This document shows, piece after piece, positions 4,137-46,400 of a stretch of 64,000 bases of DNA (the stretch's first letter is position 1; every line of letters begins with the position of its first letter). Source of the DNA: Isurus oxyrinchus. Lineage: Eukaryota. The DNA lies in NCBI GenBank assembly GCA_026770705.1, contig JANJGN010000010.1, positions 39,928,001 through 39,992,000 of the forward strand, in the 5' to 3' direction. The position numbers were made by a program, and so were the translations under genes. Below the pieces are notes generated by a model. The model was not told where the DNA came from, made no database searches, and saw only the letters and a list, made by a program, of their open reading frames with translations.

Positions 4137-4347
4137 AATGACTTTCTCCAGTACACCTGAAATATTGACACCTTCCAACAGTGTGTTCTAATCCAACTTT
4201 CCAATGATTTTATAATCCAGAGTTAAAGTTTCAAAAGTTGCTCTCCCATTGAAATCCATCCTGAGACTATCTGTATGCTTATTGTAACAGACTATCTGAC
4301 TGAGTGCACAATAAGGATAGAAATTATATACTTGGCATGGTGTTTAC

Positions 4348-4425
4348 CTCTTTCAGAGGGAGCAGTCTTGTTTTCAGGAAGTATTCTTTCAGTATCACCT
4401 TCATTTTCTTTTGGTTTTTGTTGCC
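4348..4425 (-). CDS. Cytoplasmic spacer exon S5 (same peptide as S3/S4)
   Basis: 78-nt duplicate, offset 13871 from S4. Confidence 0.55.
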
Positions 4426-7400
4426 CTTAAATAACAACAAGGTCAATATATATTATCCAGCAGACAAATTGATCTGAATCAATACCATTTGAACCTCAAT
4501 CTGGCATTATCACAAATAGATCATTCTAACTCTTGTTCAAGTTACTTCTACTAGGAATTTTTGAAAGCTGACAAGAGCACTTATATTCCAACTTTCTCTC
4601 TTGCATTCTGGTTAAAACACAAATTATGAACCGATCTGATAGCAATATGTTTTGAACAATTAGGATTGTTTGGTTTTCATTTGCTGCTGACTCACTTTCT
4701 CAAACTACTTGTGCGCTGTGCTCAAATTGTGTTCTCTTTGTTCCTAACTTTTTTATTAATAAGCTGCTGGACCACTGTTCCAGCCACTTTAAAGGATGAT
4801 TTGACATTACACATTTGGTGCCAGCTTTGTAAGTAATGCTGGTTTTTGCTCCAGTAGAATTAATGAACTGAAAGTTCATTTGGAGATCAAAACTATGGGA
4901 ATCATAAACTTTATTGTGTAGATACATACAAAGTGCTCTGCTTTAATGTTTACTGGGTTATTGGGTTGAGTAGATCAGGATGGCCAGATAGTTCTTAATT
5001 ATAAGATAAGAAATCCAGAAGTAATTTGATACTCAGTAGCCTATAATGTAATGCTGAATGGGGTGTGTCACGCTCACGCGGTACAAACCTATTAATTGTA
5101 AATATGAACTTATGGGGCAGAATTTTAACCTGGGCATGCGAGGTCAGTGTGGGCGGTCGGGAATCCAAATGCCACCTGAGATTGGCAGCGCTCTGTGAAT
5201 AAGGCCAGCCTAGTGTGATCCACAGCCTGGAATGTGTGCGAAGGAGCAGCTGGGGGGCGGGGCCATGATGTCCACCTTGTCCAATGGCGACCCGGCGGCG
5301 GATTCTAATGTGGCCTCGGCAGACCCTGGAAGGCTGCCACCAAGGGACACGGAAATGTTGCCAATGGAGACCATAGTGGGTGCACACGGCAGGAAGAAAG
5401 GCAGCAAAGTTGGGCAGTCGGCCCCGTGTTTTTCGGAAGTGGCAGGGAGGGGAGAAATCCTTGTCCCCAGGGACAGGAGGAGGATGCCCCCTCACCTCAC
5501 CAAAATGACCTTAGAGGTGTTGAAATTGAGGGTCAGCAACCACGACGCGGTGAGATGCACATGGGTCCAGTGGTGTAAGTGCTTCAACGATCTGCTGCGA
5601 TTGGAAAGGGTGAGTCCCATGTTGGCATGGGTCACTTTACAGAAGAGTTAAGGGCTGGCCACCCGCCCGCCCTTGTGTACCTCAGAGGTGTTTGAGTGTG
5701 AGTGGCAAAGGTCAATGAGGCAGGATCTGGCCAGGAGGGTGAGCCCTGGCTGCTTGGGCTGAGTGCCATGTGGCCCCAGGGTCAGGAATTGGCTTAGGCA
5801 TGCAAGGTGTTCCTCAGGTGGGATTAGACAGGCAGCAATGATCCTGCAGGTAGAGAGTGGACTAATCAATGCTCCTCTGCCCTTTCAGGAGAAAACATCC
5901 CATAACAATGCAGAGAGGTCGCAGACTGGAGGGGGACCCTCACACCTCATCATCCTCTCGCATTACAAGCAGGAGGCCCTGAAGCTGGGGAGGCACCATG
6001 CACCTCGATCAAGCAGCCGTGGTGAGGTTGGGCTGCCAGAGGGAGGTAAGAGTGCAGTGCACTGAGGTCAGAATATCAGTAATTGATACCATCCCAGAGT
6101 AATCTCTATATTGATGCGAGCCTGGAACCTGGAATCCCCACTGATAATCGAAAGACAAGGGCACCATGATGCAAATCTCTGTTGCACCAGGTGCCAGGCA
6201 TGAACAGTGACAGTTTCATGACTTAAACTAAGGACATGTCCTTCTTCCCCCTTTTAGGCTCACCAGCAGTTCTTTAGGAATAGCCTGAAGGCCAACCTCT
6301 GACCCCTGAGGACCACAATGCTGAGCACACACCAGCGTCACATCCACTCTGCCAAGCAAGTATCAGCACAGATACCAGCACCTCGGTGGGCATAACATTG
6401 CTGGGTACTCTATCAGTGCACATTGGTGAGAGCACTTCACACTCACTTGAGGTGCAGGCGGAGGCAAGAGTCCCCAGAGCGTCGGCTGTCGGAGAACTGC
6501 TGGGGACCAGGACAATGCTCAGTCAATGGCTGATGATGGGCTTCTGGAGTCGTCCATGAGGCAGCAGATTCTGGATATCCAGCAGAGTGTGTGGGAGGAT
6601 CTGGTGGAGATACATGAGGGAATGCGTGCCTTGGTGTCCATTGTGGAGGAGTCCATGCAGAGCATAAACACTGTGTTTGGCTCTCATGTCCAGAAGCAAT
6701 GCCTCCTTCATGGAGAGGAAGGTGATTCCCATGGAAAGGCTCCTCCATGGGACTTAATCAGGGGTTCCTAGGAATGTGCTCAGACCTGCAAGCCCTCACA
6801 CCGGCAATGACCTCAGCTGGTCAGTGTCAGTGTGGGAGATGGATTGGGCACCCAGTCTACCTGCTAGGTGCCCGTTCATCAATGAGCAGGGAGGTCCAAA
6901 GCGTTGGCACACGACGTTTGCAGACAAGCTGCCTGTTATCTCTGCGGGCTCCTTTCAGGGCGCTCTGGATGATAGCAGAGGCTCTTCTGCCCCAATGCCA
7001 GTGACATGGTATCTGAAGAGGCTGCAGTGACTGAGGAGTTGCCAGTCATGGCACTGGCCATGCCTTTCCCGGCGAAGCCAGCAAGGCTCCACGATCAGAG
7101 GACGCTCGCCAAGGCCATCAAGGCCAACAGGACAGCAGAGTGAGCAGGCTGTCTCCAATGCCGGTGCCAGCGAGGGGGAAGCACCTAGACGGAGCACTTG
7201 CAAGCGAAATCTTAAAGGACATGAAGCACAACACAGCCTGATCACCGGTGATATTTGGTTCTCCCATTTTTCTTCATTTTTAATGGTGTGATGAAAACAC
7301 TGGTTCATGTTCATTTCTGCTATTTTTAACCTTCACAAGTAAATGAGATGTTATTTTGTGCAACTGGCCTCTGTATGCTTCATTTGGATACATCAGGACA

Positions 7401-10400
7401 CAGTGTAATGGAGCAGGGAATGTAGAAACCGTCAGATGTATGTTGTAATTCTGGCACCTCAGCACTTAAGGAATTCTCTTTCTTGCTTAAATCTAATGCA
7501 TTTTTGAGGGGACGAGTTACTCTTTGGTCCTGATAACTGCTCTGCTGAAATTTCCCAGTGAAATAAATTCTTTGCTTCCTGCTCCCCTTTCCTCTTCACA
7601 GATGTAACAATGTGCACCACTTCTGGACTGAACACAGTAACTTCCCAACTCAGATTGGTTTCCTCACCATCTATGATTTCACGAGGTTTCTTGATATCAC
7701 TAATTGAAGGTGGAGCTGGAAAACAAAAGATATTATTGAGATATAAACTCTTATGTTCCAACTTCTTCTATTTATTCTTATTTAGACACAAATTAGGAAC
7801 TGAACAAACAGGAATGTTTATTGAACAATTAGACGGACAATTAATAGGTTCTCAGTTGCAGATGTCCCACTTTCTCTAAACTACATACAAGTTCTGCGCA
7901 AACTGAGGTCCCTTCATCATACTGGGCTATTAACGAGCTAATGAACCACTGTTTGAGCCTCTTCGAGTGAATGACTTGTTGTTACTCAACTTGTGGCAGC
8001 TCTGTAAGTAAAGTTAGTTTCAGCCAGCAGGATTAGTGAACTGCAAGTTCTAGTGTACAGCCACCCTATGGGAATCGTGAACTTATTTTGGAGATGGACA
8101 GGTGGATTCAATTATTGCAGTCCATGTTGGGACCAACAACATGGTAAAGAGAAGGAAAGAGATCCTATTCGGAAACTATCAAGATCTAAGAGTTAATCAA
8201 AGGACAGCATCTCAAAAGTTATAATCTCTGGATTATTTCCCAAGCCACATACAAAACGGCATTGGGATAAATTAATTAGGGAGATGAACACATCATTGAA
8301 TGGGTGGTGTGGGAAAGAGGGCTTCTTGAAGGACCTCCCGAGTCACTTCAGAGCATGAGCCAGTTTCTTGATCATATGTTCCAGGAGGTGACCACCTCAT
8401 AGGCAGAAAGAGTTCAGGATAGTAGATGGGTGATCATCCAGAAGAGTTGGAAGAGAGAGGAAGTGCAGGCCTCTTCAGACTATGTGCCACTCTGAAACCG
8501 GTACTCATTATTGGAGACTGCTGGGTGCCAACACCCTGAAAGAGTGCACTCCAGATCATGGCACCAATGGGCAAAGGATTGCATGGGGGAAACAGCAAAA
8601 TTTAGCAATGCAGTATAGGAGATTAAATAGTTAGGCAGGCAGATAGCATTTCTGTTACCCTCATCTCGAGTTCCACATAGTATGGGTATTGGAACTAGAT
8701 CTCAACAAGACTGGGGGAGGATGTGAGAGAGGAGCAGTGGGGAGCGTTGTGCACCAGAATTTCGAAGTAGAAAAGTGGAATAAAGGAGTGACAGTGTTGG
8801 ATAGTACTGGAAAAGGAAATAGGAGCATATTAGATAGGAACAAGCTAAGAAGGACTATGAGGAACACAAAGATAGCTTGACAGGGCATGCATATAAAGAC
8901 ACAAAGTATGGTGAAGAAGCTTTGTGAGCCACAAGCAAAATATCCGTGTGAGAACTTGATGTAGTGGCAACAATGGAAGCGTGACTTTAAAAAAATGAAA
9001 ACTGGGGACTTAATATTCACAGATCCAAAGTGGTCGGAAGAGATAGGGAAGGAATAAAGGAAGTCAGGTGGTATAACTGATTAGGAAGAGATTGCAGTGT
9101 TGGAAAGAAAGATTGTCCTTGAGGGGGTAAGCACTGAATCTACTTGATTGGAGTTGAGAAGGAAAAAGTGTATGGCCTCCAAATAGTGAGTGAGAGAGTG
9201 AGATGGAGGGGCAATTCTGGAGGAAAATCTTAGAGCTGTGTTAGAACTGTAGCATTGTTATATTGGGGTACTTTTGTTGAACAAATATTGACTGGGGTAT
9301 TGTTAAGAGTGAAGGGTAAAGAGGGGGAGGACTTTTTGAAACATGTCCAGGAGAATTTCCTTGATTGGTATGTTTTTCGTCCAATTAGAAATGAGGCATT
9401 GCTGGATCTGATGTTGGGGAATGATGTTGGCCAATTAGATCAAACATCTCTGGGGGAGCAATTGTATAAGTGTGATCATTATATCATAAGTAATGAGAAA
9501 GAACAAGGAACAATCTAACACAGAACTTCTGATTTGGAAGAGGGCTAACTTCAATGGGCTGAGAGAGGATTTTGCCAGGGCAAAATGGAACCAAAGTTTG
9601 ACAAAAAAAATGCAACTACAACAGAACAATGGGTGATCTTTAAAGAAGAGATATCAGCTAGATATACTCCAACAAAAAGGTAAGGCAGGAGAACCAAAAC
9701 CTCGGATTCTTGGATGGCAAGAACAATAGATAATATGATGAAACAAAAAAATAGGGTGTATGATGCATATCAGCTGAATTCCTCAAGTGAGAACCGAGTT
9801 AAATATAATAAGCTGAGAAGAGAAATGAAGAGGAAAATAGGATTCGCAAAGAGAGAACATGAGAATAGAATTGCAACTAACATGTACAATGACCCCAAAA
9901 TTTTCTTCTTTAAAGTAACATTGAAAGCAGCACTGGTCAGGAGATAACAATCAGGGTAGATTACTCAAACTAAAATAGAAATTTGTAACAGAGAGGTTTA
10001 AGAGTTGCAGCAATGTTCCCCAGGATGAAGCCAGTAAGACTGTCAGGGGATGAAGTCAATCCACATAAATTGTGGCGCCTTGTTAAGAAATCATTATCTT
10101 TTGCCACAGTTGTGAACAATAACCTCAGGGTGGAGAATAGTAGAAATATAAGGAACAGTGTTTTACTTACTCACTGAACTGATAGTTAGCTTGACTGCGT
10201 GTATCATGGATGTTTTTGTGTCAAAGTGCAAGACTGTCAACAACAATCAGGAATAATTTCTACAGACAGAGAAGCAACGCAATGGGGAATGACACAAATG
10301 GAGAGAAGATGTCAGAATTTCACAAAGCCTGACCTGCAAACACTTTATGGAACATCATGAGTATGATGAAACCTCCATTCATGGATGAATGCTATGAGGA

Positions 10401-13400
10401 ATCAACTACAGTTTCGTTCATGATTCATGCTTAGTTATGACATATATGTAAGCACACAATCAGATTGTTCATCCTACTCTGGGTCTTGGTTTGTTAAGGA
10501 TTCTAGGGGTGGCTGCAGGATTCAGGATTTAATTTGTTCCTTTCTGTCTCAGGTTTGTGGCATCTAAGTTGCTAAGCATGCCATTGATAAATATCTGTTT
10601 ATTAATGGCCAATTGAAAGGCGGCACAGCAAATGTAAAATACAAACAGGGAACATTAGCAGAAGCCCCCAAGGATTACATGTAGAAATTAACACCTGTCA
10701 ACTCTATTCTTGTGTTTTTCACACGTTAATTCCTACAAGAAGTCATTGACTTTCTTAAATTGGGACTGACTTCCGTAATAATTATAGTGATTCCTATAGT
10801 ACCAACATAAGAGAACAAATCACTTCTGACCAAATTATTACACTGTTGTTTGATAAATCATATCTATGCAGGATTTGCTAAATTTAAGGGTAATAGTATT
10901 TCAAACTCTCTCTATGTTGATGTCATGATTTCCAGCTGAAGTTTTTCATAATCATATGTCCCATAAGTTTGTGTGATGTACAAAATGTAGAAATTACCTG
11001 CTGTGACCTTCAGTAGTGTGCTTTTAGTACAAGTTTCCTCACTGGTGTCCTGTTTAACTTCAATAATTAACTCAGCATCATCATCCTTGGATACATCAGG
11101 ACACAGTGAAATGGAGCAGGGAATGCGGAAACCGTCAGATGTACTTTGTAATTCTGGCACCTCAGCACTGAAGGAATCATCTTTCTTGCTTAAATCTGAA
11201 AGATTGTTGAGCGGGCCAGTTACTCTCTTTGGTCCTGAGAATTTCTCCGCTGGCATTTCCCAGTGAAATAACTTCCTTGCTTTCTGCTCCCCTTTCCTCT
11301 TCACGGATGTAACAACATTCACCTTTCCTGGACTGAACATGATAACTTCCCAACTCAAATTGGTTTTATCACCAGCTATAATTTCATCCGGTTTCTGAAT
11401 ATCACCAATTGAAGGTGGAGCTAGAAAAAAAAAAGGCATTAATATGATCTCTCCTATGCATTCTTGTTTAGATACAAATTACAAACTGAACTGATAGCAA
11501 CATTAATTGAACAATTAGATGATGATTAATTGGTTCTCATTTGCTGCTGTCTCACTTTTCTAATGAGCATCTGAGTTGTGTTCAAATTGACTTAGTTCCA
11601 AAATAGTTTACTAATGGGCTGATGAACCACTGTTCGAGCATCTTTGTATGGGTGACTTAACATTACTCAGTTGGTGGCAGCTTCATAATTAATGCTGATT
11701 TGAGCCTGGAGGATTTGTGAACTACAGATCAACCCTATGGGAATGATAGGCTTTACTGTGTCAATACACACAAAGTGCTGCTATATTGTTCACATATGGG
11801 CATATGGCCAGACACTGTTTAGTGTGAGATGATAAGAAATCCTGAGGAAATTTGGCGTTCAGTAGCCTATGATGTGATGGTGAGTGGAGTGTATTCACCA
11901 TTGTGACTATTTTGTTTAAGCCTGTCACCAAGAGCTATCTACAGATTCTTCAGTTATCCAGTTGGTTCAATAGGTAGAATTTTTGCTTTTCGGTCTTAGA
12001 TTGTCGAACTAGATTCATTGCATGACTTGAGCATGGAATCCAGGTGAAACCCCTGTGCTTTTATTCATTCATGTGGTATGGGCATCGCTGACTAGGCCAG
12101 AAATTAGTGTTCATCCCTAATTGCTTAAGAAGGTGGGGGTGAGTTGCATTCATGAAGAGCTAGACTCTATCTGATGTAGGTACCACACCCACACTGCTGT
12201 TAGGGAGAGAGTTCCAGGACTTTTGACCCAGCGACAGTGAAGGAACGGTGATGTATTTCCAGCTAGGGATGGTGTGTGACTTGGAGGGGAACTTCCAGGG
12301 TGTGGTGTTCCCATCTGTCTGCTGCCCTTGTCCTTCTAGTTTGAATGGTTGTGGGTTTTGATGATGCTGCCTAAGGAATGCTGGTGAATATCTGCAATGC
12401 AACTTGTAGTTGGTACACACTGCTGCCACTGTGCATCGGTGATGGAGGGACTGAATCTTTGGGATGGGGTACCAATCAAGTGGGTTGCTTTGTGCTGGAT
12501 GTTGTTGGAACTGCACTCATCCAGGCAAGTGGAGAGTATTCCATCACAGTCCTGACTTGTGCCAGGCTTTGGGAGTCAGCAGGTGAGTTATTTGCCGCAG
12601 GATTCCTAGCATCTGACATGCTCTTGTAGCCACAATGCCTATATGGCTAGTCCAGTTCAATTTCTGCTCAATGGTAATCGCCAGGATGTTGAAAGTGGGA
12701 GTTCAGCGATTGTAATGCCATTGAATGTTAAGGGGCAATGGTTAGATTCTCTCTTGTTGGAGATGTTCATTGCCTGTCACTTGTACGTGGTATGCCTGAC
12801 ACAAATGTTACTTGCCACTTGTCAGCCAAAACCTGGATATTGTCCAAGCCTTGCTACATTTGGACATTGACTGCTTCAGGATCTGAGGAGTTGCAAATAG
12901 TGCTGAATATTGTGCAATCATCAGCGAACAATCCCAATTCTGACCTTATGATGGAAGGAAGTTCATTGATGAAATAGCTAAATATGGTTGGGAAACCTTT
13001 TCCATGGCCATAGCACTACCCTGAGGAACCCCTGCAGTGATGTCCTGGAGCTGAAATGATTGGCCTCCAACAATCACAACCATCTTCCTTGGTGTGAGGT
13101 ATGACTAGAAACCAGTGGAGGGCTTTCCCCCTAATTTCCATTGACTCCAGTTTTGTGTTATGGTCCCAGCTGAGTTTACCCCTGGACGAGCCTGATGTCA
13201 GGGCGGAACCCAGCTTGATAGATCCTAACTTTTATTTGTTTGTATAGATATGTGGAGAGTAGCTACTGAACACAGTCACAGGAGTCAGCTGATGAACTTT
13301 TAACAAAAGAATAAAATGCTTATTCAACAAGAACGGATGAACTAGATTACAATACTCCTTCACCCACAGCTATATACAGATTTGTAAAGATAAGACAAGT

Positions 13401-16400: not shown

Positions 16401-19400
16401 AGTAGGACACCCAGGGCCATCCACTCAAGGTGATGCAAGGGTGTCCAGCCATTCCAAATCCCCTCGGCCAGAGACCCCATCAACTCCAATTGGTCAGACA
16501 GAGTAGGTCGACCTGCCCCCCAGCTGGTGACCTTTAGCAGGACAGGGCACTTCAGGCCTCAGCGCTCCAGAGGACACCAACTAAAGTCATCCCAGACAAT
16601 AGGGCATAGCTATCAGCAGGCTGCCTGCACTTCTGATGCACAGGCATCTCCATTCACCCAGGAGGACAGAGGTTTGCAGCTGCGAGTTGACTGCCAATCA
16701 CCAGCATGCACTTTGTAGGCATCCCCTTCCTTCTCTCCCATCATCACTAGCTCTGACTGCAGCCGATGGAAAATGGCTGAGTGTGAATAGCAGCTCTGCA
16801 GCTTTCTGCGATCTCGATGTTATGAGAGCCCTCTGGGCCAGACAGGCTGCTGTGTGGGCCTCACCAGATACTGAGGATTTCAAATGACCATAGCTCTCAC
16901 AGTTTTTCCATGATTTTTAGGGTGTTCCTTTCATTGTCCAGTTGTGCTGACCTTGACCTCCATCCACCTGAGAAGAGCCTCTTCCCACCTGAATGTTTTG
17001 CAATTGGACATCGAGGGCATTGTCTTGCTATTGAGCTGCCTTTCTGTAGTGATGGTTCAGGTTACTTTTCATACCCACTCAACCACCTTTTACCCTCCCC
17101 CTGTCATTCACCAACTTCCCCCCCACCCCAGCACCATCGACCCCCCTAATGTGACTTTCACTCTCCCCTCTGTAACCCTTCAACCTCCCCATTACACTGT
17201 ACCTATCATTATCAATCTTCACCTGCCTTCCCTCCCTGCAAAGACTACACCCGTTACTGCACCCATGCCCACTTGCCCACTCCCCTTTTTGGTGCCAACT
17301 TTGTTGTCCCCTTCAATGACCCTCCTGATGAGCATTACACCCACCAAACACACACCCTGACGCTCCCACCCATCCCTTCTTGCCATCAGCGCCCTCAGTT
17401 CTACCCCCAGTACTTTGTCATCGACACTGCTGACCACACCCTATAACACACTGTTCCACACTCCCTGCTCACTCCATCTACTTTGTAGCCTTCCACTGCC
17501 CCTCCTGCAGACTGACAACACCTTCATCTCTTCCAATCCCGCTTCATGCCCCCAACATCCCCTTCCCGTGCCTTCCACACCTTCTTTCCATGTGTACCAT
17601 CTGTGATGGTGGCTCCCGTCACCCAAGAGAAGACTGATCCTCCTCAATGGGGAAGGCAGCATCGTGTGCCTGCTAAGTCCTGGAAGTCACCCTCGCTCTG
17701 CACTTGCCACATTAGTTCATTCGTGAAACAGAACAGTATAAATTCCCGCTAACAGTGTGGTGGATTTGATGGGGGTGCAAGATCCTATTCATTTGGTCTG
17801 GTAATTTGCATTCTGGAGATGCAAAATGGGTTCCTGACGTTCACCAGCGGGAAAGTCGACCCACCATTTACCTGCCACGAAAGGTCGGGTGAACAAGATT
17901 CCAACCTGATCTCCCGATATCAGAAAACTGATCTTTGGACTCTCGTCACATCTCCTGCTTCCACCCACTACGATTCTCCCCGGTGGTGGGAGGGGACGAT
18001 TTCGTCCAATGACTTTCTCCAGTACACCTGAAATATTGACACCTTCCAACAGTGTGTTCTAATCCAACTTTCCAATGATTTTATAATCCAGAGTTAAAGT
18101 TTCAAAAGTTGCTCTCCCATTGAAATCCATCCTGAGACTATCTGTATGCTTATTGTAACAGACTATCTGACTGAGTGCACAATAAGGATAGAAATTATAT
18201 ACTTGGCATGGTGTTTACCTCTTTCAGAGGGAGCAGTCTTGTTTTCAGGAAGTATTCTTTCAGTATCACCTTCATTTTCTTTTGGTTTTTGTTGCCCTTA
18301 AATAACAACAAGGTCAATATATATTATCCAGCAGACAAATTGATCTGAATCAATACCATTTGAACCTCAATCTGGCATTATCACAAGTAGATCATTCTAA
18401 CTCTTGTTCAAGTTACTTCTACTAGGAATTTTTGAAAGCTGACAAGAGCACTTATATTCCAACTTTCTCTCTTGCATTCTGGTTAAAACACAAATTATGA
18501 ACCGATCTGATAGCAATATGTTTTGAACAATTATGATTGTTTGGTTTTCATTTGCTGCTGACTCACTTTCTCAAACTACTTGTGCGCTGTGCTCAAATTG
18601 TGTTCTCTTTGTTCCTAACTTTTTTATTAATAAGCTGCTGGACCACTGTTCCAGCCACTTTAAAGGATGATTTGACATTACACATTTGGTGCCAGCTTTG
18701 TAAGTAATGCTGGTTTTTGCTCCAGTAGAATTAATGAACTGAAAGTTCATTTGGAGATCAAAACTATGGGAATCATAAACTTTATTGTGTAGATACATAC
18801 AAAGTGCTCTGCTTTAATGTTTACTGGGTTATTGGGTTGAGTAGATCAGGATGGCCAGATAGTTCTTAATTATAAGATAAGAAATCCAGAAGTAATTTGA
18901 TACTCAGTAGCCTATAATGTAATGCTGAATGGGGTGTGTCACGCTCACGCGGTACAAACCTATTAATTGTAAATATGAACTTATGGGGCAGAATTTTAAC
19001 CTGGGCGTGCGAGGTCAGTATGGGCGGTCGGGAATCCAAATGCCACCTGAGATTGGCAGCGCTCTGTGAATAAGGCCAGCCTAGTGTGATCCACAGCCTG
19101 GAATGTGTGCGAAGGAGCAGCTGGGGGGCGGGGCCATGATGTCCACCTTGTCCAATGGCGACCCGGCGGCGGATTCTAATGTGGCCTCGGCAGCCCCTGG
19201 AAGGCTGCCACCAAGGGACACGGAAATGTTGCCAATGGAGACCATAGTGGGTGCACACGGCAGGAAGAAAGGCAGCAAAGTTGGGCAGTCGGCCCCGTGT
19301 TTTTCGGACGAGTGTCTTTCAGCCCTACTGGAAGAAGTGGCAGTGAGGAGAGAAACCTTTGTCCCAAAGGAACAGGAGGAGGATGCCTCCTCACCTCACC

Positions 19401-22400
19401 AAAATGACCTTAGAGGTGTTGACACTGAGGTTCAGCAGCCACGACGCCGTGAGATGCACATGGGTCCAGTGGTGTAAGTGCTTCAACGATCTGCTGCGAT
19501 CGGAAAGGGTGAGTCCCATGTTGGCATGGGTCACTTTACAGAAGAGTTAAGGGCTAGCCACCCTCCCGCCCTTGTGTACCTCAGAGGTGTTTGAGTGTGA
19601 GTGGCAAAGGTCAATGAGGCAGGATCTGGCCAGGAGGGTGAGCCCTGGCTGCTTGCACTGAGTGCCATGTGGCCCCAGGGTCAGGAATTGGCTGAGGCAT
19701 GCAAGGTGTTCCTCAGGTGGGATTAGACAGGCAGCAATGATCCTGCAGGTAGAGAGTGGACTAATCAATGCTCCTCTGCCCTTTCAGGAGAAAACATCCC
19801 ATAACAATGCAGAGAGGTCGCAGACTGGAGGGGGACCCTCACACCTCATCATCCTCTCGCATTACAAGCAGGAGGCCCTGAAGCTGGGGAGGCACCATGC
19901 ACCTCGATCAAGCAGCCGTGGTGAGGTTGGGCTGCCAGAGGGAGGTAAGAGTGCAGTGCACTGAGGTCAGAATATCAGTAATTGATACCATCCCAGAGTA
20001 GTCTCTATATTGATGCGAGCCTGGAACCTGGAATCCCCACTGATAATCGAAAGACAAGGGCACCATGATGCAAATCTCTGTTGCACCAGGTGCCAGGCAT
20101 GAACAGTGACAGTTTCATGACTCAAACTAAGGACATGTCCTTCTTCCCCCTTTTAGGCTCACCAGCAGTTCTTTAGGAATAGCCTGAAGGCCAACCTCTG
20201 ACCCCTGAGGACCACAATGCTGAGCACACACCAGCGTCACATCCACTCTGCCAAGCAAGTATCAGCGCAGATACCAGCACCTCGGTGGGCATAACATTGC
20301 TGGGTAATCTATCAGTGCACATTGGTGAGGGCACTTCACACTCACTTGAGGTGCAGGCGGAGGCAGAGAGTCCCCAGAGTGTCAGCTGTTGCAGAACTGC
20401 TGGGGACCAGGACAATGCTCAGTCAATGGCTGATGATGGGCTTCTGGAGTCATCCATGAGGCAGCAGATTCTGGATATCCAGCAGAGTATGTGGGAGGAT
20501 CTGGTGGAGATACATGAGGGAATGCGTGACATGGTGTCCATTGTGGAGGAGTCCATGTACAGCATAAACAGTGTTTGGCTCTCATGTCCAGAAGCAATGC
20601 CTCCTTCATGGAGAGGAAGGTGATTCCCATGGAAAGGCTCCTCCATGGGACTTAATCAGGGGTTCCTAGGAATGTGCTCAGACCTGCAAGCCCTCACACC
20701 GGCAATGACCTCAGCTGGTCAGTGTCAGTGTGGGAGATGGATTGGGCACCCAGTCTACCAGCTAAGTACCCGTTCATCAATGAGCAGGGAGGTCCAAAGC
20801 GTTGGCACATGACGTTGGCAGACAAGCTGCCTGTTGTCGCTGCGGGCTCCTTTCAGGGCGCTCTGGATGATGGCAGAGGCTCCTCTGCCCCAATGCCAGT
20901 GACATGGTATCTGAAGAGGCTGCAGTGACTGAGGAGTTGCCAGTCATGGCACTGGCCACGCCTTTCCCGGCGAAGCCAGCAAGGCTCCACGATCAGAGGA
21001 CGCTCGCCAAGGCCATCAAGGCCAACAGGACAGCAGAGTGAGCAGGCTGTCTCCAATGCCGGTGCCAGCGAGGGGGAAGCACCTAGACGGAGCACTTGCA
21101 AGCGAAATCTTAAAGGACATGAAGCACAACACAGCCTGATCACCGGTGATATTTGGTTCTCCCATTTTTCTTCATTTTTAATGGTGTGATGAAAACACTG
21201 GTTCATGTTCATTTCTGCTATTTTTAACCTTCACAAGTAAATGAGATGTTATTTTGTGCAACTGGCCTCTGTATGCTTCATTTGGATACATCAGGACACA
21301 GTGTAATGGAGCAGGGAATGTACAAACCATCAGATGTATGTTGTAATTCTGGCACCTCAGCACTTAAGGAATTCTCTTTCTTGCTTAAATCTAATGCATT
21401 TTTGAGGGGACGAGTTACTCTTTGGTCCTGATAACTGCTCTGCTGAAATTTCCCAGTGAAATAAATTCTTTGCTTCCTGCTCCCCTTTCCTCTTCACAGA
21501 TGTAACAATGTGCACCACTTCTGGACTGAACACAGTAACTTCCCAACTCAGATTGGTTTCCTCACCATCTATGATTTCACGAGGTTTCTTGATATCACTA
21601 ATTGAAGGTGGAGCTGGAAAACAAAAGATATTATTGAGATATAAACTCTTATGTTCCAACTTCTTCTATTTATTCTTATTTAGACACAAATTAGGAACTG
21701 AACAAACAGGAATGTTTATTGAACAATTAGACGGACAATTAATAGGTTCTCAGTTGCAGATGTCCCACTTTCTCTAAACTACATACAAGTTCTGCGCAAA
21801 CTGAGGTCCCTTCATCATACTGGGCTATTAACGAGCTAATGAACCACTGTTTGAGCCTCTTCGAGTGAATGACTTGTTGTTACTCAACTTGTGGCAGCTC
21901 TGTAAGTAAAGTTAGTTTCAGCCAGCAGGATTAGTGAACTGCAAGTTGTAGTGTACAGCCACCCTATGGGAATCGTGAACTTATTTTGGAGATGGACAGG
22001 TGGATTCAATTATTGCAGTCCATGTTGGGACCAACAACATGGTAAAGAGAAGGAAAGAGATCCTATTCGGAAACTATCAAGATCTAAGAGTTAATCAAAG
22101 GACAGCATCTCAAAAGTTATAATCTTTGGATTATTTCCCAAGCCACATACAAAACGGCATTGGGATAAATCATTTAGGGAGATGAACACATCATTGAATG
22201 GGTGGTGTGGGAAAGAGGGCTTCTTGAAGGACCTCCCGAGTCACTTCAGAGCATGAGCCAGTTTCTTGATCATATGTTCCAGGAGGTGGCCACCTCATAG
22301 GCAGTAAGAATTCAGGATATTAGATGGGTGATCATCCAGAAGAGTAGGAAGAGAGAAGAAGTGCAGGCCTCTTCAGACTATGTGCCACTCTGAAACCGGT

Positions 22401-37400: not shown

Positions 37401-40400
37401 TTTGCAGCCCCCTCCATAGGATAGTGTTGGTGGGGATTTACAGAGCCTGCAGAATTAGTGAACTGAGATATGCATAAAGTGCTCTTTGTGAACTGAACTG
37501 AGAACATCAGGATGGCCAGACAGTTCTTAGCATTATATAAAGAGAGACCCTGGTGTAATGCGGTACTCAGCAACCTATAATGTAACAGTGACAGTGCATT
37601 CGCCATTGTGACTACTTAAACAAAATTTCCAAAAGTATTGACCCATGAAAGTACCACCTTCAAAATAGCATTTATCATGGTTGTTACGAATTTGCTTTGG
37701 GTAGAAGCATCAGCTAAATTACTATAATAATAATTAACAATATAATATTCAAATTCAGCCATCGCATTAAAGCAGTGGGTGAGTTGAACATTTCTGTCTT
37801 CGCTCTGAAAAACTAAATTAAGTTGATTTTTATGTGTCTGTGCCCACAACTGATTTTGTCCATGTATGAATGGCTCTTTACACAAAAAGGTTCCCCACCC
37901 CTGCCCTAAACCAAAGCCACCAAAAAGCTTCAAATAAACAAGCATTCCTTTTATAATAAAAAAGTAGCAAATGCTGGAAACATTAAGCAGGTCAGGCAGC
38001 ATCTGTGTAGAGAAACAGAGTTAATGTTTTAGACCGATGATCCTTCATTAGAACAGATGAAGTATCACAACCTGAAATGTTAACTGTATCTCTCTCCACA
38101 GATGCTGCCTGGCCTGCTGATTGTTTCCAGCATTTTCTGTTTTTATTCTAGATTTCTAGCATCTGCAGTACTTTGCTTTTGTATTTGTATTCTTTTCACC
38201 TGTTATTGGTGGGACAATGCTGTGGTTAACATGAACATTTCCCTCAGTACACCTGCAATTCTGTCACTGTCCTCGATTCTCTTCTGAGGTACTCTACCAA
38301 CTTTTCAGACTTTATGAGATTCAAAGAAAAGTTTGGAAAGCCCCTCTTACATTGAAATCCAGGCTGAGATTATATGTGTTTTTATTGTAAGAGAATATAT
38401 ACTGAGTGCCGAATGATAAGAATCAAAATTATGTACTTAGCATAAATATTTACCTCTTTTATTGTGAGGAATCATCTCAAGAACGGCACCACCAGTATCA
38501 TCTTCACTTTCTTTTGACTTTTGTTGTCCTGAACCACAATGCAGAAAAAAATATATCAGCAGGCACACAAACTGACCTGAGTTGAATCCTGAATGTATCA
38601 ATTTATGTGACATCATTCTAGATTCTCATTTAAATGCCTTGTATTAGAAATTTTTGATACCACTTTGATGAAACATTTGTTTCATTGGTCTTTCATTGTT
38701 CAAGTATAATAAAGCAGAACTAAATGTTTGCTTATTGTGAACATTGAAGTGAGAAATGTCATAATGACAACTATTTGTTAATTTCCAGCTGTTCAATGAT
38801 GTTTAATCTGTTTATTTATAATCAGTGTGCAGAATGTCACCCGAAAACATGGTAATCTATATTTAAAAGCAACAGAAACAGAATATTTGTGAGGCATGCT
38901 CAGCTGATGTCAACGTGTTTTATTTAACACTCACACATGTCCCACCTGCCAAGCTAAAAATTCTGATCATGAAGTATGAACTGAAAATGGACACTTTCTG
39001 GGAGCAGAAATGGAGCAAGAGGTCAGCCTGGAACTGTAAGCAAACTCAGCTAATTTTCATATCTAGACAATGCTTCAGAAAATCATTAACCTTCCTCCAC
39101 TAATGGCTATATTTCTCCAACTAAATAAAACACTGGGTTCACAGGATTTGGTAAATGGAAGGCAAATAGTATTTCAAACCCTCTATAAGTTGGTGTCATG
39201 ATTTCCAGCTGAAGGTTTTCATAATCATATGTCCATAAGTTTGTGTGATGTACAAAATGTAGAAATTACCTGCTGTGACCTTCAGTACTGTGCTTTCAGT
39301 ACAGGTTCCCTCACTGGTGTCCTGTTTAACTTCAACAATTAATTCAGCACCATCATCCTTGGATACATCAGGACACAGTGTAACGGAGCAGGGAATGAGG
39401 AAACCGTCAGATGTACGTTGTAATTCTGGCACCTCAGCACTGAAGGAATCATCTTTCTCACATAAATCACATACATTTTTGAGGGGACTTGTTACCCTCT
39501 TTGGTCCTGATAACTGCTCTGCTGAAATTTTCCAGTGAAATAACTTCTTTGCCTTCTGCTCCCCTTTCCTCTTCACAGATGTAACAATGTTCACCACCTC
39601 TGGACTGAACACAGTAACTTCCCAAATCAGATTGGTTTCCTCACCATCTATGATTTCACAAGGTTTCTTGATATCACTAATTGAAGGTGGAGCTAGAAAA
39701 AAAAAGTCATTATTGTGATATAAACTCTTATGGTCCAACTCTCTTCTATGTATTCTTATCTAGACACAAATTGGGAACTGAATTGACAGGAATGTCTATT
39801 GAACAACTAGGTGCACAATTAATAGGTTCTCAGTTGCAGATGCCTCACTTTCTCCAAGCTACATACAAGTTCTGCTCAAACTGAGTTCCCTTGATTACAC
39901 TGGGCTATTAACAAGCTAATGGACCACTGTTTGAGCCTTTTCGAGTGAATAATTTGTTGTTACTCAGCTTGAGGCAGCTTTATAAGTAAAGTTAGTTTCA
40001 GCCAGCAAGATTAGTGAACTGCAAGCTCTAGTGTAGAGCCACCCTATGGGAATCGTAAACTTTACTATGTAAACACACACAGGGGAGAATTTCCCCCCGG
40101 TTCGGGGGGAGATGTTCAGGAGCAGGTGCTTGCAGGTGGGCCTCCAGTCAGTGCCCACAATCAGGGCTGCGCTGCCATTTTACGTGGGCAAGCCGATTAA
40201 GTAATTAAGGCCCACCCAGCGTAACATCTGCCAGCAAGTGCTATGCGCTCCCTGTGGAAGCGGGGGGAAATCTCCTAAGTCGGGAATGCGCTCTTACGTG
40301 CATGTGCATGAAAGTGCACGCTCATCTCCCTGAGGAAAAATGCTGCCTCAGGGACATCAGCGACAAATTCAAAAATGGTAAATGCGCAAACATAAAATTT

Positions 40401-43400
40401 CCCTGACATGTCCCCTCATGTGACACTGTCACGAGTTGGCACATGGCCATCACTTTTTTCAAACTTTAAAAACAATTTTAAAACCTTGATGAAACCTCAT
40501 CCCACCCACGGATGAGGTTTTATGCTTTTTCTGAAGCCCGCCAGGTCTCCCGGCCTGACCGCCAACTTTAAGGTTGGACAGGCAAGTCCATTAACTACTT
40601 TAATTACTTTTTAAACAGCCTCAATCGGCCATTGACAGGTCGGCGGGCACACAGCTGATTCGGCTGCGACCCCACCCACCTGAAAATAGAAATGACGCGG
40701 GGTGACTTTGGGAGTTCTGCCTGACATCATCCCATGTCATTTTACGAGTCGGGCCCCGCCCCTCGCTCGCCAACCTCAATATCCTGGCCACAGTGTTCTT
40801 CTATACTCAGCTGAGGTCATCAAGTTGGTCAGATAATATTTGGCGTTATATGGCAATAAAACTCTGTTAATTTAGTATTCAGCAGCTTATACGCTAAATG
40901 GAATGTATTAATCATTGCTAATATCTAACAGAATCCCACATCGAGGCCTGTCTACAGGACCTTCAGTCTTCCAGTTGGCTTAGCTGGTAGCAATCTCAGT
41001 TTTAATTCATAATCTTGTGGGTTCGAGCTCCACTCTCAGGCTTGAGCACAGAATCCAGGTGACACTTCAGTGTTCGACTGAGGGAGTGCTACATAGTTGA
41101 AGGTGCCAATTTCTCAAGCATGTATTAAACAAGGGACTATCTGATTGCTCAGGTGGATGTAAAAGATCCCTTGACACTTTTATAAGAAGAACAGGCTACT
41201 CTCTGGTTATAGTAAATCATTATTTTCTCTCAACCAATGCCACCAAAAAAGCCCAGAATAGTCTACAACATTAAAGGTGGGTGGAGGTAATGTTTTTACC
41301 CGTTTGTTAGTCTGTTTGTACGTCCGTAAACATTATATTTTTAAAAACTAATGGACAGATTTCAACAAAAATTAGTACACAGATAGGTGATGGTCCAGAA
41401 AAGAATGGATTAGTTTTTGGTGAAGATGCAGATCTGGATTCAGATCCTGTTTTGTTTAAAAAATGTATCCTTTAACATTGGGAGATAGGGAAAATCGTAT
41501 TTTTTTTAAAAGAATGTTGTGAATTCTGTCAGCCACTGTGGTCATATTTGTCACAGCTATCAAAATGTGAGCAGTGTTTTCAGAGCAGCTTGTTGGATGT
41601 GCATTGGCCTAAAGCCTCCTCAGTTTTTAAGCTCTTTATAAAAGTATTGATATTTTCAGCTTTGTGGTTGCAGAGCATCAACCAGGCAGGAAAATGCCTC
41701 AAGGAAGAGCTGTATAATTATAATAATGTTGAGTTCACACAGCGTGGCAGGGGTATGTGCTCTATTGAGCCCCCTCTTCGTTTGTTATTTGTTGTTTTTG
41801 GGACCTTGCTGAGCATATTTCAATGATGATTTCCATTACACCTGCATTTCAGTCACTGCCCCAGAATCTCTCCTGTGATGCTGAACCAACTTTTGAATCT
41901 TTGAGAGAATCAGAGTTAATATTTCAATTTTGTATGACTCTTCTTCAGTGCAAAACGTTAACTCTGTTTCTCTCTCTACACAGATGCTGCCAGACCTACT
42001 GAGTTTTTCCAGCATTTTCTGTTTTTATTTCAGGTTTACCACATCCACAATATTTTGCTTTTATTTTGAAACTTGCAGTCTGGATAATGAAAAGTTTGGA
42101 CTGACCCTGTCCCATTGAAATTTACCTGAAATTATCTGTCTCCTAATTGTTGTTGAATATATGACTGAGTGTGTTCAGATTAAATTGATAAGAACGGAAA
42201 TTATGTACTCAGCATAAAGATTTACCTCTTGGAGATTGAGAACTCTGCTTCTCAATAAGAGCTCTGCCAGTATCATCTTCAATTTCTTTTGCTTTGCTTT
42301 GTCCTTAAACAACATAAAGCAGAACCAAACATCTGGTTATTATCAAATTTATACTAAGTTATAGCAGTGCGAGTTTTCTGTCCTGCAGTAGGTTTTTGGC
42401 CCGTCAGACCATCCCAAATGAACACAGCTACAGGACATGTATCCACCTCAAATTTCTCTGGTGCAGAATCATTGAACTATATTGTGAAGTGGAGACACTG
42501 TGACACATAAGGGTGGAAACAGTATCTGGCCAATTTTCTCTGGACTTTGGTGACATCTTATATAGAAGTACAGGCTCAGAATGCAGTTAGTGTGACCATT
42601 TATGTGCAGAATTGGGGGAATCCAGGTTAGGTAGAAACCATAGAAATTGATCCCATTTAACAGGTACCGTATATCAGCTACCAGTGTGGATAGCCAGACA
42701 GATAGGCAGAATACGAATAATACCAACATTGGAGCAGCAGATTGTCAAAAGTAGGAGGAGGAGGAGGGAAAGCTTAGTGTGGTATTTGTAAGAGATTCGA
42801 TAATTAAGGGGACAGATAGCATTTGTTGTAAGCAGGATCGAGAGTCCTGTATGGTTTGTTGTCTAATTAGTGCTGGGGTGAGGGACATCTCAAACTGGCA
42901 TGAAATTATTTCAGAGATGGATGGGTGGATCCAATTATTGGAGTCCACGTTGGAATCAACAACATGGTAAAGAGTAGGAAAGAGATCCTATTCAGAGACT
43001 ATCAGCATCTAGGAGCTAAATAAAGGGCAGCATTTCAAAGATTATTATCTCTGGATTATTTCCCAGGCCACATACAAATCAGCATTGGGATAAATAAACT
43101 AGGGAGGTGAACACATCATTGAACAGGTAGCGTGGGAAAGAGGGCTTCTTGAAGGACATCTGGAGTCACTTCAGAGCATGAGCGAGTTTCCTGGATCATT
43201 TGTTCCAGGAGGTGGCCACCTCATAGGCACTAAGAGTTCAGGATAGCAAATGAGTGACCATCTGGAAGCGTAGGGAAGAGCAGGAAGTGCAGGTGTCTTC
43301 AGGATGTGTGCCAACCTGAAACTGATACTCATCACTGGCGACTGCTGGATGCCAACACCCAGAAAGAGTGCAGTCCTCATCATGGCACCAACGGGCAAAT

Positions 43401-46400
43401 GATTGCATGGGGGGAACAGCAAAGTTTAGCAATGCAGTAGAGGAGATTCCATAGTTACGCAGGCAGACAGACATTTCTGTTACACTCATCTTGAGTTCCC
43501 GATGGTGTGGGGCATTGGAACTAGGTCTCAACAAGACTGGGACCAATGTCCTCAGGGGAAGGTTCATTATTTTGGTTAGGGAGGGTTCAAACTTAATTGT
43601 GGGGTGCTGTAGGGAGACGAACAGTTGGGAGCATTGAGCACCAGAGTATTGAAATAGAAAAGTGGAATAAAGGTGCTTAAAGGAGGGACAGTGTTCAATT
43701 GTACTAGAAAAGGAAGTAGTAACATATTAGGTAGCAGCAAGCTAAGAAGGATTATGAAGAATACAAAGACAGGTTGAGAATGCATGTATGTAAACGCACA
43801 AAGTGTGGTGAATAAGCTTTGTGAGCCACAAGCAAAATAGTTGTGTGCAAACATGGAGTAGTGGCAATAATAGAAGTCTGGCTTAAAAATAATGAAAACT
43901 GGGTACTTAATGTTCATAGATCCAAAGTGGTCAGAAGAGGTGGGGAAGGAATAAAGGAAGATGGGTGGCAGTACTGATTACAGAAGAGATTGTAGTGTTG
44001 GAAAGAGACAATGTCCTTAAGGGATTAAGGCAGATTCCACTTGATTGGAGTTGAAACTCAAAAAGTGTATGGCCTCCAAATAGTGAGAGAAAGGGATGGA
44101 GGGGCAATTCTGGAGGAAAATCTTAGAGCTTTGTAAGAAATGTAGAATAGTTATATTGGGGTATGTTTGTTACCCAGATATTGACTAGGATAATGTCAGA
44201 GGAACGGGTATGGAGGAGGAGGACTTTTTGAAATGTGTTCAGGAGAACTTCCTTGATTAGTATGTTTTTGGTCCAATTAGAAATGAGGCATTGCTGGATC
44301 TGATGCTGGGGAATGAGGTTGGCCAATTAGATCAATCATCTGTGCCAGAGTAATTGGGTAAGAGTGATCATTGTATCATAAGTAATGGAGAAGAGCAAGG
44401 AACAATCTACATAGAACTTCTAATTTGGAAGAGGGCTAACTTCAATGGGATGAGAGGGGATTTTGCCTAAGTTGGACAAAAAAATGTACCTCTAACAGAA
44501 CAATGGGTGACCTTTAAAGAACAGATGTTTCAAGCATAAGCCAGGTATACTCCATCAAAAGGGAAAAGCAGGAGAAACAAAACTAGGGCTTCTTAGATGG
44601 CAAGAGCAATCAAGAATATGATGAATCAAAAAATAGGGTGTATGATGCATATCAGTCGAATTCCTCAAGTAAGAACCAGGCTAAATATAATACGTTGAGA
44701 AGAGAAGTAAAGAGGAAAATAAGATTTGCAAAGAGAGAGCACGAGAATAGAATTGCAACTAACATATTCTAACATATGATATCGAGTGTGGGATGTGGCA
44801 AACACTGAAAATGTTACAAAGCAACTGCAAGAGAATATGGATAGACTAGTAGAATAGGCATTCAGGAGGCAAAAGGACACTAATGCACTGAAGTGCTAGG
44901 TGATGCATTTTGCTGAAGGGATAAGGAGAGACAATCTATGGCAAAGCTAGTTCCAAAGAGTGTGCAGGGACAGAGGTTCTCATGCATAGATTTTTAAAGT
45001 TGGCAGGACATATCAAAAGAGGAGTTAGCAAATCAAATGGGATCACAGGCATCATAAGGAAAGATATTGAGTACAAGAGCTAGGAAGTTATGCTGAACTT
45101 TTATGAAACTCTGGTTAGGCCACAATTAGAGAGATTTGCGAAAGGTGTAGAAGATTAAGACAAATCTAGTTAAGGTAGATTAAAAAGGCTGACAGTACAA
45201 GGACTAGATGACACAGATTTAAGGTTTTGGGCAAGAGATGCAGGGGGGATGTGAAGAAGAACTTATTTTACGCGGGGAGTGATGATGACCTGGAACTCCC
45301 TGCCTTGCATGGTGGTGTGGGAGTGGGAAGTAGTCAATGATTTCAAAAGGAAATTGGATGGGAACAAGGGAAATGAACCTGCAGGGGATACAACAGACGA
45401 GTGAGACTGACTGGATTGCTCCACAGAGAGCCAGCATGGACTCGATAGACTGAATAGCATCCTTTTGTGCTGCAAGGACTTGTGATGAAAGGATTAACAG
45501 TCCCGTGGTGAAGCCAATGATTATCATAACGAGGCCAACTAATGCTAGTCAAAACCAGTGTTAGAGAAAACAAAGCAAATCCACAAATTGTGATTCCTTG
45601 CCAAGAAATCTTTCTGTAGTTCAATACATTAACAAATATTCAATATCTTTAATAAAATTTCCAAGCAAAAATTCCAATAATCAAGTAGTTCTCACTTTAT
45701 CATTTGTAGTTTTTCCTTATGAAAATGAAAAGGACCTTACTTTTATGTTTTTTGTTCCAGAAATAATATCCCAAACATACTGCACAAAGCACAACAAAGC
45801 CACAGATGCTTCCAATAATTGGTCCTATTGGTATTTGTTCTGTTAAAGTAGAAAACACAGACAACAGTTGAAAATTTGACAATAAATAAGTTGTATCATT
45901 TTCATATATATTCATTAGAAGCCATATCTGTCCTGTTTTTTATTAATCATGTCTGTTTATTTTCTAGAAGATGTGGTAGAAATGGGTACGTATTGATGTG
46001 AAATAGATGCAATCTTGATAACCTTAGCAGTGGTAGTCTGAAGCCAATCTCATGTGCATTTGGTCTTATGCTAAATTATTCAGGCTTACTTTTTAGTCAT
46101 CCTGGAAAATGTCCTTACAATGGGCAGAATTTTCTGTTTTTCAGACTAAGGGTGGAATTTTCTGTGCCCGCTGGCATCTGGCATGTTTGGGGGCCTGAGC
46201 AGACAATATGGCGAGAAGACCAAAATCAGTTTCAAGACGTCATGAAAATGCGTTGTAATACATCTGCATATCATTATAAGCCCAGCTCGCCAGGATCATT
46301 CTCCCATACTGGATCATCCGGTCACATCGGCATGTGTTTGTTTCACAACTGAACATAAGTGACATGCACCAGGCAAGTTGCACTTCACTCGGGACTTTGA

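Follow-up and report, generated by a model that had tools for sequence, protein, structure and literature searches.

The window, a stretch of 64,000 nucleotides from Isurus oxyrinchus, contains a B7-H6/B7-H3-type gene on the minus strand, which starts at position 59989 and continues beyond the left edge of the window as a single gene. Its length is at least 60 kb, and most of it lies within the window. The exons were searched individually by similarity and follow the order leader, V, C1, and a 99-nt transmembrane (TM) exon, after which come units composed of a 75- to 78-nt acidic spacer and a 423-nt exon (Table 1). Each repeat unit pairs one spacer of about 26 amino acids with one exon encoding 141 amino acids, referred to below as the module. 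The exons described in the first-pass annotation, including the TM segment with its KKHK sequence, the spacers, and the 141-aa exons, were all recovered on the minus strand at the positions it had assigned to them.

Table 1. Exons and exon copies of the B7-H6/B7-H3-type gene, with positions counted within the window.
Feature	Position	Strand	Description and basis
Leader (signal peptide) exon	59938..59989	-	17 codons + 1 base; gtaaga donor; located by its ATG, hydrophobic stretch, and phase-1 donor
IgV exon	54173..54511	-	339 nt, phase 1-1; Pfam V-set 1e-09, above cut-off; splice sites
IgC1 exon	50907..51221	-	315 nt, phase 1-1; Pfam C1-set 1e-13; tblastn to homologues; splice sites
TM exon	45741..45839	-	99 nt, phase 1-1; acceptor AG, gtaagg donor, reading ...WNKKHK
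Spacer S1	42226..42303	-	78 nt, acidic, core ...KEIEDDTGR...; tblastn to homologue spacers; splice sites; transcript-like contigs
Module cIg1	39270..39692	-	intact open 423-nt exon, phase 1-1; predicted 141-aa disulfide-free Ig-like domain
Spacer S2	38454..38528	-	75 nt; tblastn to homologue spacers; AG/GT sites
Spacer copy S3	25882..25959	-	78 nt; tblastn to homologue spacers; AG/GT sites intact
Broken module copy psi-B	21281..21611	-	2-nt deletion; 3' third and donor gone; tblastn frame switch, DNA alignment
Spacer copy S4	18219..18296	-	duplicate of S5 and S3; AG/GT sites
Module cIg2	10998..11420	-	intact open 423-nt exon, phase 1-1; 76% aa identity to cIg1
Broken module copy psi-A	7383..7713	-	near-identical to psi-B
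Spacer copy S5	4348..4425	-	tblastn to homologue spacers; AG/GT sites

The gene displays the features of a B7-type ectodomain, namely a signal peptide, IgV, IgC, and a single TM segment. Its leader exon is similar to the N termini of the homologues P0004 and P0001, and the IgV exon shares 74% identity with zebra shark P0004 in tblastn. The TM exon, which matched the TM region of P0008 in tblastn, has an acidic flank ahead of its hydrophobic run and NKKHK behind it. The best PDB matches of the ectodomain were CD276/B7-H3 and NCR3LG1/B7-H6, ahead of TAPBPR, CAR, and PD-L1, with E values against CD276 of 2e-23 for zebra shark P0004 and 1.9e-16 for the V exon of the window. These matches support a B7-like ectodomain without separating B7-H3 from B7-H6; the initial proposal of a B7-H6-like ligand agrees with them in that these two proteins are the best solved relatives. 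An elephant shark member of the family is named NCR3LG1-like by NCBI. At the other end of the gene, the terminal exon of the homologues (...NPSQ-stop) was searched for across the window and not found. Thus, the 3' end lies outside the window, and the gene probably continues past position 1.

The S1, cIg1, and S2 exons are joined by splicing in mRNA: GT..AG splices from S1 to cIg1 and from cIg1 to S2 on the minus strand occurred in transcript-like contigs of four studies, with the RNA evidence covering the stretch of S1, cIg1, and S2 (at most 6000 bases). The joints, 42226 to 39692 and 39269 to 38527, came from runs X1, X5, and X7, which represent three studies, and from X2, which represents a second organism; the latter joint was found in X1, X5, and X7. 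The coverage by contigs from these four runs was restricted to exons and repeats, and an Rfam search of a highly covered intronic repeat at about 41950-42060 returned sub-threshold chance matches only. As had been anticipated, a spacer exon leads into the Ig exon, and these transcripts do not stop after S1. In one X1 contig of 992 nt, S1 is joined to cIg1 and preceded by 868 nt, a length that fits either a TM-included or a TM-skipped form. The 868 nt are consistent with the leader, V, C1, and TM exons (52 + 339 + 315 + 99 nt) together with a 63-nt 5'UTR, in which case the TM exon would be included in the module-containing mRNA of this gene.

The 141-aa module is confidently predicted to be a two-sheet Ig-like β-sandwich. 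The AlphaFold2 model, for which the alignment contained full-length homologues, was all-β, with a pLDDT of 90.4 and a pTM of 0.84. All structural matches found with Foldseek were Ig domains, and VIA gave a Z of 11.6 and an rmsd of 2.6 Å over 114 residues with V-type Ig domains. Together, the two analyses uphold the earlier description of the exon as Ig-like. In Pfam, neither cIg1 nor cIg2 reached the C1-set cut-off or matched any Ig family. A phmmer search with the module retrieved no PDB sequences, while the ESM Atlas provided weak leads only, all below 0.9 and pointing to Ig families. A two-copy complex prediction of the module scored 0.00, which gives no verdict either way on self-association.

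Profile comparison shows the descent of the module from the gene's own C1-set domain. Alignment of 56 module instances to the extracellular C1 domains of the family with hhalign gave 97.6% (E 3.4e-12 over 92 columns), as compared to 22% in the control with V domains. The canonical disulfide between strands B and F is lost in the module, as is the strand-C Trp. At the strand-B Cys position, 37 of the 56 instances carry Trp and 14 Cys; the strand-F position retains Cys in a single instance and is occupied by Val, Ile, Leu, or Phe in the other 55, and the strand-C Trp is replaced by Thr, Ser, or Val. About 40 residues have been gained between C and D, and this insertion bears an invariant Trp. 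The number of cysteines was odd in 68% of class-A modules, as compared to exactly two in 23 of 24 V domains, and sequons were about half as dense as in the ectodomain and occupied no conserved column. Odd cysteine counts and few sequons are signs of what may be a reducing compartment.

A search with the module among 1.84 billion representatives recovered 27 proteins at E ≤ 1e-3, including 13 at E ≤ 1e-30, a number of matches that is not due to chance. The order signal peptide-V-C1-TM-(spacer-module)n was present in horn shark, cat sharks, zebra shark, sevengill shark, manta, stingray, skate, and elephant shark. Across homologues, the number of module copies ranged from one to seven or more, with seven in the horn shark protein at a period of 167 aa. 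Judged by homology, the module corresponds to the post-TM domain nearest the membrane in a B7-H6-like family that spans chimaeras to frogs.

The two intact modules of the window lie 28 kb apart. The broken copies psi-B and psi-A each retain the acceptor, carry a 2-nt deletion, and lack the final ~89 nt including the donor, as seen in the DNA alignment. In addition, the region contains a 10.5-kb duplication that is 98.8% identical, and module copies group by species in clustering. These pseudo-exons, the duplication, and the species-wise clustering show a turnover in which module copies have been born and lost, in line with the birth and death suggested by the first-pass annotation. Its "tandemly expanding array" holds for the repeated spacer-module units and the duplications but not for their spacing, as the distance between the intact modules is far from a tight tandem. 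The locus also offers a clean example of exon-block birth and death within one gene.

The leader scan, the NKKHK sequence, and hydropathy indicated a signal peptide and one hydrophobic segment that obeys the positive-inside rule, with no further one downstream. A scan of the window revealed neither a leader nor a TM exon between the TM exon and the module exons, which matches the earlier reading, and in homologues from many species the module comes after the sole TM segment. A hydropathy scan likewise found no second hydrophobic segment after the TM in any full-length homologue. By topology, the post-TM modules would be cytoplasmic. Because S1, cIg1, and S2 are spliced into mRNA, the protein probably carries folded antibody-like modules inside the cell.

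With moderate confidence, we propose that the gene encodes a type I B7-H6/B7-H3-like membrane protein, whose amplified post-TM Ig modules would serve as a cytosolic docking or spacing tail. The product would consist of a signal peptide, IgV, IgC1, one TM helix, and a tail of repeated spacer-module units. In this gene lineage, the membrane-proximal post-TM domain has been amplified together with its spacer by duplication of spacer-module blocks, some copies of which have decayed. Translated from a TM-containing mRNA, the modules would lie in the cytosol like beads on an acidic string, where they could dock or space intracellular partners. The B7-type ligand might thereby gain an inside-out or reverse-signaling tail, by analogy with the B30.2 domain of butyrophilins. 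A broader extension, which we offer only tentatively, is that B7-H6-like ligands of cartilaginous fish, and more broadly of non-mammalian jawed vertebrates, may carry folded cytosolic Ig modules and act as two-sided receptors with a copy number tuned by exon-block duplication.

An unlikely competitor is a secreted isoform, in which the TM is a cassette exon and the modules belong mainly to an extracellular stalk or multimerising body, the membrane form being secondary. All exons share phase 1-1, and thus skipping of the TM exon would give a soluble V-C1-(spacer-Ig)n protein. Annotated isoforms missing exactly the TM segment exist in horn shark (X3, P0030, 31 aa removed relative to P0028) and in the common frog Rana temporaria (X2, P0026, 37 aa removed relative to P0048). 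Their occurrence in two distant species makes a secreted form with modules outside the cell possible, and the label "cytoplasmic" used in the first-pass annotation stands as a topological argument from a single TM with none after it. Moreover, from elephant shark to sawfish, canonical Cys pairs are kept in the post-TM domains that come later in sister genes, a feature more easily explained by an oxidising compartment. However, the modules themselves have lost the canonical disulfide in all but one instance, contain variable and often odd numbers of cysteines, and have few sequons. In addition, the TM is present in the main annotated isoforms of the homologues as well as in P0035 (UniProt V9K7L7), which we take to be derived from an elephant shark transcript assembly, and no branch was evident at the S1 acceptor in the X1 contig. 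For glycosylation, redox state, and protease accessibility, the membrane form and the secreted form without the TM lead to opposite expectations.

We consider it rather improbable that the duplicated blocks are neutral ballast, tolerated as a long tail without specific binding, with only the first one or two present in mature mRNA and the rest decaying. This reading would fit a window in which two of the four module copies are broken, a region rich in transposons and segmental duplications, a copy number that varies freely between species, and homologue tails that finish in unrelated low-complexity repeats. Yet modules of this type, with their invariant residues, have been conserved between elephant shark and amphibians, dN/dS between cIg1 and cIg2 is 0.44, the spacer sequence is conserved across sharks in tblastn, and the fold is predicted with high confidence. 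The assignment of the modules and the V-C1-TM exons to different genes, brought together in a chimeric model, is close to refuted. The small-spotted catshark model P0003 has modules without ectodomain or TM, but it begins mid-module and is thus a truncated model. Furthermore, the absence of an intervening leader or TM exon, the X1 contig that joins the sequence upstream of S1 to cIg1, and models of at least eight species in which ectodomain and modules are joined all speak against two genes. Hardly any credence is left for a PH-like domain (Pfam PH_29) instead of an Ig domain. Its colinear matches stayed below threshold (E 0.002-0.006, 17-18 bits versus a cut-off of 27), whereas the all-β AlphaFold2 model has no C-terminal helix such as PH folds possess, the top structural matches were Ig domains without exception, and the profile-profile match was to C1-set; this candidate was dropped on fold and profile evidence.

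To our knowledge, the Ig domains of IgSF surface proteins are extracellular. Their presence after the membrane anchor, in a family that dates back at least to the origin of jawed vertebrates, would put the antibody fold to a new use. One lineage of this family has removed the disulfide from one of these domains and increased its copy number, and B7-type ligands would thereby acquire a structured intracellular half. If the cytosolic docking tail is real, the disulfide-free 141-aa module would represent an Ig domain that has become suited to a reducing compartment and serves in recognition or docking inside the cell, and the ligands could take part in sensing or signaling on either side of the membrane. 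We know of no such two-face sensing or signaling in this gene family other than that of butyrophilin B30.2 domains. The small size of the module, its high-confidence prediction, and the exact exon boundaries make the question directly testable. We found no description of Ig domains behind the TM of B7H6-like proteins in the full-text literature searched; an earlier description may exist in Flajnik et al. 2012 (Immunogenetics 64:571) or Ohta & Flajnik 2015 (Immunol Rev 267:6).

B7-H6 (NCR3LG1, the NKp30 ligand) shares the signal peptide, IgV, IgC1, and single TM, and the zebra shark homologue has an ectodomain that aligns with solved B7-H6 chains at an E of 2.5e-21. The tail of mammalian B7-H6 is unstructured, with gag-like similarity and short signaling motifs, whereas that of the shark protein is predicted to contain folded Ig-like modules with acidic spacers; the likeness is one of sequence and domain order. 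B7-H3 (CD276) is the best solved match to the shark ectodomain by sequence, and the human protein has also been enlarged by tandem exon duplication (VCVC). However, that duplication is extracellular, keeps its disulfides, and leaves a short tail, while the shark duplication is post-TM and has lost the disulfide. The nearest functional analogy would be with butyrophilins such as BTN3A1, which combine a B7-related V-C ectodomain and one TM with a folded β-sandwich in the cytosol. Their intracellular B30.2 domain mediates ligand sensing and inside-out signaling. In contrast to the modules, B30.2 (PRY-SPRY) belongs to another fold family and is present as a single copy, and Pfam found no B30.2 domain in the window gene or its homologues.

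IGSF1 is an IgSF protein with Ig loops on either side of an internal hydrophobic segment. Besides a second hydrophobic element, it possesses a C-terminal TM, and it is cleaved so that all loops are lumenal, whereas the shark family has one hydrophobic segment and none later. Serial disulfide-free Ig-like modules in the cytosol, the location proposed for those of the shark, are found in titin, obscurin, and filamin. Theirs, in contrast, are I-set or filamin-type domains of soluble cytoskeletal proteins, and phmmer against the PDB detected no sequence relation to the module. A further comparison is with the sister B7-H6-like genes (P0015, P0017, and P0035), which share the layout and whose first post-TM domain is homologous to the module and also lacks the strand-F cysteine. 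In their tails, distinct C1 domains follow one another, and several of these have canonical Cys-Cys pairs, while the window gene amplifies only the membrane-proximal, disulfide-free domain with its acidic spacer. Sister genes with canonical C1 arrays after the TM are located in the same gene cluster of this genome.

We re-derived the reading frames, splice sites and exon coordinates of the B7-H6/B7-H3-like gene and found that the first-pass annotation had placed and described it correctly. All features of the gene lie on the minus strand, where long open frames occupy 39196-39738 and 10912-11439; the plus-strand translation of the annotated intervals is closed. Every exon is in phase 1-1, and the five spacer exons, which are interspersed with the 141-aa modules, share a conserved acidic core. 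A tblastn search with the first module (window:39271-39690:-) found four copies in the window, two intact with 76% protein identity to each other and two that switch frame. DNA alignment showed that both broken copies retain the acceptor and carry a 2-nt deletion, with homology ending about 89 nt short of the donor. The terminal exon of the homologues was looked for in the window and not found; thus, the gene probably continues off the left edge. As had been annotated, no second leader or transmembrane (TM) exon lies between the modules: there is a single TM exon and no later hydrophobic segment. The structural claims on the gene are confirmed.

Positions of the exons and module copies in the window; the five spacer exons measure 75-78 nt and have clean AG/GT sites, and the two intact module exons measure 423 nt in phase 1-1
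Feature	Position	Strand	Remark
Leader exon	59989-59938	-	upstream of V exon
V (IgV) exon	54511-54173	-	
C1 (IgC1) exon	51221-50907	-	
TM exon	45839-45741	-	acidic residues before the hydrophobic run; NKKHK and gtaagg donor after it
Spacer exon S1	42303-42226	-	
Intact module cIg1	39692-39270	-	in-frame reference window:39271-39690:-
Spacer exon S2	38528-38454	-	
Spacer exon	25959-25882	-	
Broken module	21611-21281	-	frame switch in tblastn
Spacer exon	18296-18219	-	
Intact module cIg2	11420-10998	-	in-frame reference window:10999-11418:-
Broken module	7713-7383	-	frame switch in tblastn
Spacer exon	4425-4348	-	

RNA contigs from four runs, three of them (X1, X5 and X7) from one organism in three studies and the fourth (X2) from a second organism, were aligned to 38430-44429. 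There, they cover S2, cIg1, S1 and some dispersed repeats, and the remaining intron sequence is uncovered. Because the contigs lie on exons and repeats and not on the rest of the introns, they behave as transcript assemblies, the run type itself being a guess. The joint from S1 to cIg1 (42226->39692) was found in X1 and X2, and that from cIg1 to S2 (39269->38527) in X1, X5 and X7, and both read GT..AG on the minus strand; cIg1 is thus joined to spacer exons in mRNA, as the annotation had proposed. Of the 992 nt of the X1 contig that spans S1, 868 nt lie upstream of S1, and the coding parts of the leader, V, C1 and TM exons sum to 805 nt. This upstream length fits a complete 5' part, and it would equally fit a transcript that skips the TM exon and has a longer 5'UTR. 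At 39270-39366, contigs from X1, X5 and X2 carry a third module variant identical to neither cIg1 nor cIg2, with nine differences in 98 nt and four of the six listed letters in common with cIg2. The X1 contig with this variant measures 1014 nt, and its other 916 nt fall off the aligned region on the transcript-downstream side. At least one more module copy is thus probably expressed, and it may lie outside the window or in a paralogue. Within the S1-cIg1 intron, a short dispersed repeat at about 41950-42060 occurs in a very large number of transcript contigs, flanked by many different sequences, and its summed depth reaches up to about 72,000 in X1. Many mRNAs probably carry it as a SINE-like element; an Rfam search with it returned no family above threshold.

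The annotation had called the 141-aa domain Ig-like, and structure prediction bore this out. The AlphaFold2 model, built from a 22-row alignment, was all beta (pLDDT 90.4, pTM 0.84), and the leading Foldseek matches were all Ig domains; a second structural aligner matched V-sized Ig domains (Z 11.6, rmsd 2.6 A, 114-115 residues). In profile-profile comparison, 56 module instances matched the family's extracellular C1 domains at 97.6% (E 3.4e-12) and its V domains at 22%. The alignment to C1 places Trp23 of the module at the strand-B cysteine, Val119 at the strand-F cysteine and Thr, Ser or Val at the strand-C tryptophan, with about 40 extra residues between strands C and D. Among the 56 instances, the strand-F position is cysteine once and the strand-B position is tryptophan in 37 and cysteine in 14; a tryptophan within the C-D insertion is present in 55 and a strand-E cysteine in 50. 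Judged from profile and model, the module derives from a C1 domain and has a predicted Ig-like fold, but departs from two textbook criteria of the C1-set. Pfam Ig models gave no match to it, and a PH_29 identity, raised by sub-threshold Pfam matches, was rejected in view of the fold evidence. The inserted loop of cIg1 holds a Cys-x-x-Cys pair (residues 74-77, 39460-39475); cIg2 has serine at both positions and most homologues have cysteine at only one, which shows that cysteines are gained and lost freely in the module.

A HMMER search with the module against 1.84 billion representatives matched 27 proteins. The strong matches, all NCBI models, belong to horn shark, two cat sharks, zebra shark, sevengill shark, two mantas, stingray, skate and elephant shark, and the complete ones have a signal peptide, V, C1 and TM followed by repeated spacer and module. 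Module number per model is one in sevengill shark, manta and stingray, two in zebra shark, at least three in cloudy catshark, seven with a 167-aa period in horn shark, and three to eight or more in elephant shark. The weak matches comprise sister genes of skates, rays, basking shark and elephant shark, together with genes of coelacanth, lungfish, newt and frogs. In these genes, the module homologue is the first post-TM domain and further Ig domains follow, several of which Pfam assigns to the C1-set; the layout with post-TM Ig domains is also found in lobe-finned fishes and amphibians. The homologue models are public and labelled uncharacterised. A literature search, whose coverage of the most relevant work on B7-H6 evolution was incomplete, found no description of the layout.

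The birth and death of copies that the annotation had proposed is likewise supported. The region 1-10504 recurs at 13872-24403: the two copies of this 10.5-kb segmental duplication are 98.8% identical, are spaced 13.87-13.90 kb apart and each hold one spacer exon and one broken module. The duplication may be very recent, or it may reflect collapse or expansion in the assembly. Older, incomplete copies occupy 24400-28309, 28324-31432 and 40675-43959. The last two, 92-94% identical, represent an older duplication of the intron block that contains S1; in 28324-31432, the stretch expected to hold the spacer exon measures 81 instead of 258 nt, and one spacer exon has thus been deleted. Between cIg1 and cIg2, dS is 0.26 and dN 0.115; the ratio of 0.44 implies that both were constrained after their split. 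In a maximum-likelihood tree of all 56 instances, with no rows left out, elasmobranch modules form one clade (support 100/99) and copies within it group by species (window pair 89/78, cloudy catshark 100/99, zebra shark 100/100, horn shark 100/100); amphibian and lobe-finned fish instances sit on long branches that are unreliable. The grouping by species points to lineage-specific amplification or homogenisation.

The annotation had further placed the modules inside the cell. A leader, one TM segment obeying the positive-inside rule and the lack of any later hydrophobic segment argue for this topology. The elephant shark protein P0035 (UniProt V9K7L7), which we take to derive from a transcript assembly, also has the TM followed by the array. 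The module has lost the canonical disulfide; its cysteine number varies and is odd in 68% of class-A modules, whereas 23 of 24 V domains have exactly two, and its sequons are about half as dense as those in the ectodomain, with no conserved site. These indirect signs fit a reducing compartment. A location behind the membrane, in the cytosol, is thus probable, and we lean toward reading the array as a cytosolic tail.

The intracellular placement would apply to the TM-containing form; annotated TM-skipped isoforms speak against it as a general rule. Precisely the TM segment is missing from horn shark isoform X3 (P0030; 31 aa) and from Rana temporaria isoform X2 (P0026; 37 aa), in species separated by about 450 million years, which suggests a conserved membrane/secreted switch by cassette exon skipping; since all exons are in phase 1-1, skipping the TM exon preserves the frame. 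In addition, the sister genes retain canonical cysteine pairs in their later post-TM domains, in species from elephant shark to sawfish, which speaks against a purely cytosolic array. The same disulfide loss, odd cysteine counts and low sequon density make it rather unlikely, however, that the modules mainly serve in a secreted isoform.

Two further repeats were observed. In the intron after S2, a mirror-image pair of retroelement ORFs (31433-35939) forms a fold-back with reverse transcriptase and GIY-YIG-like motifs of a kind typical of Penelope-like elements. At 60467-64000, a higher-order tandem repeat has a 1298-nt period composed of 326-, 88- and 470-nt steps, and some of its copies are 100% identical.
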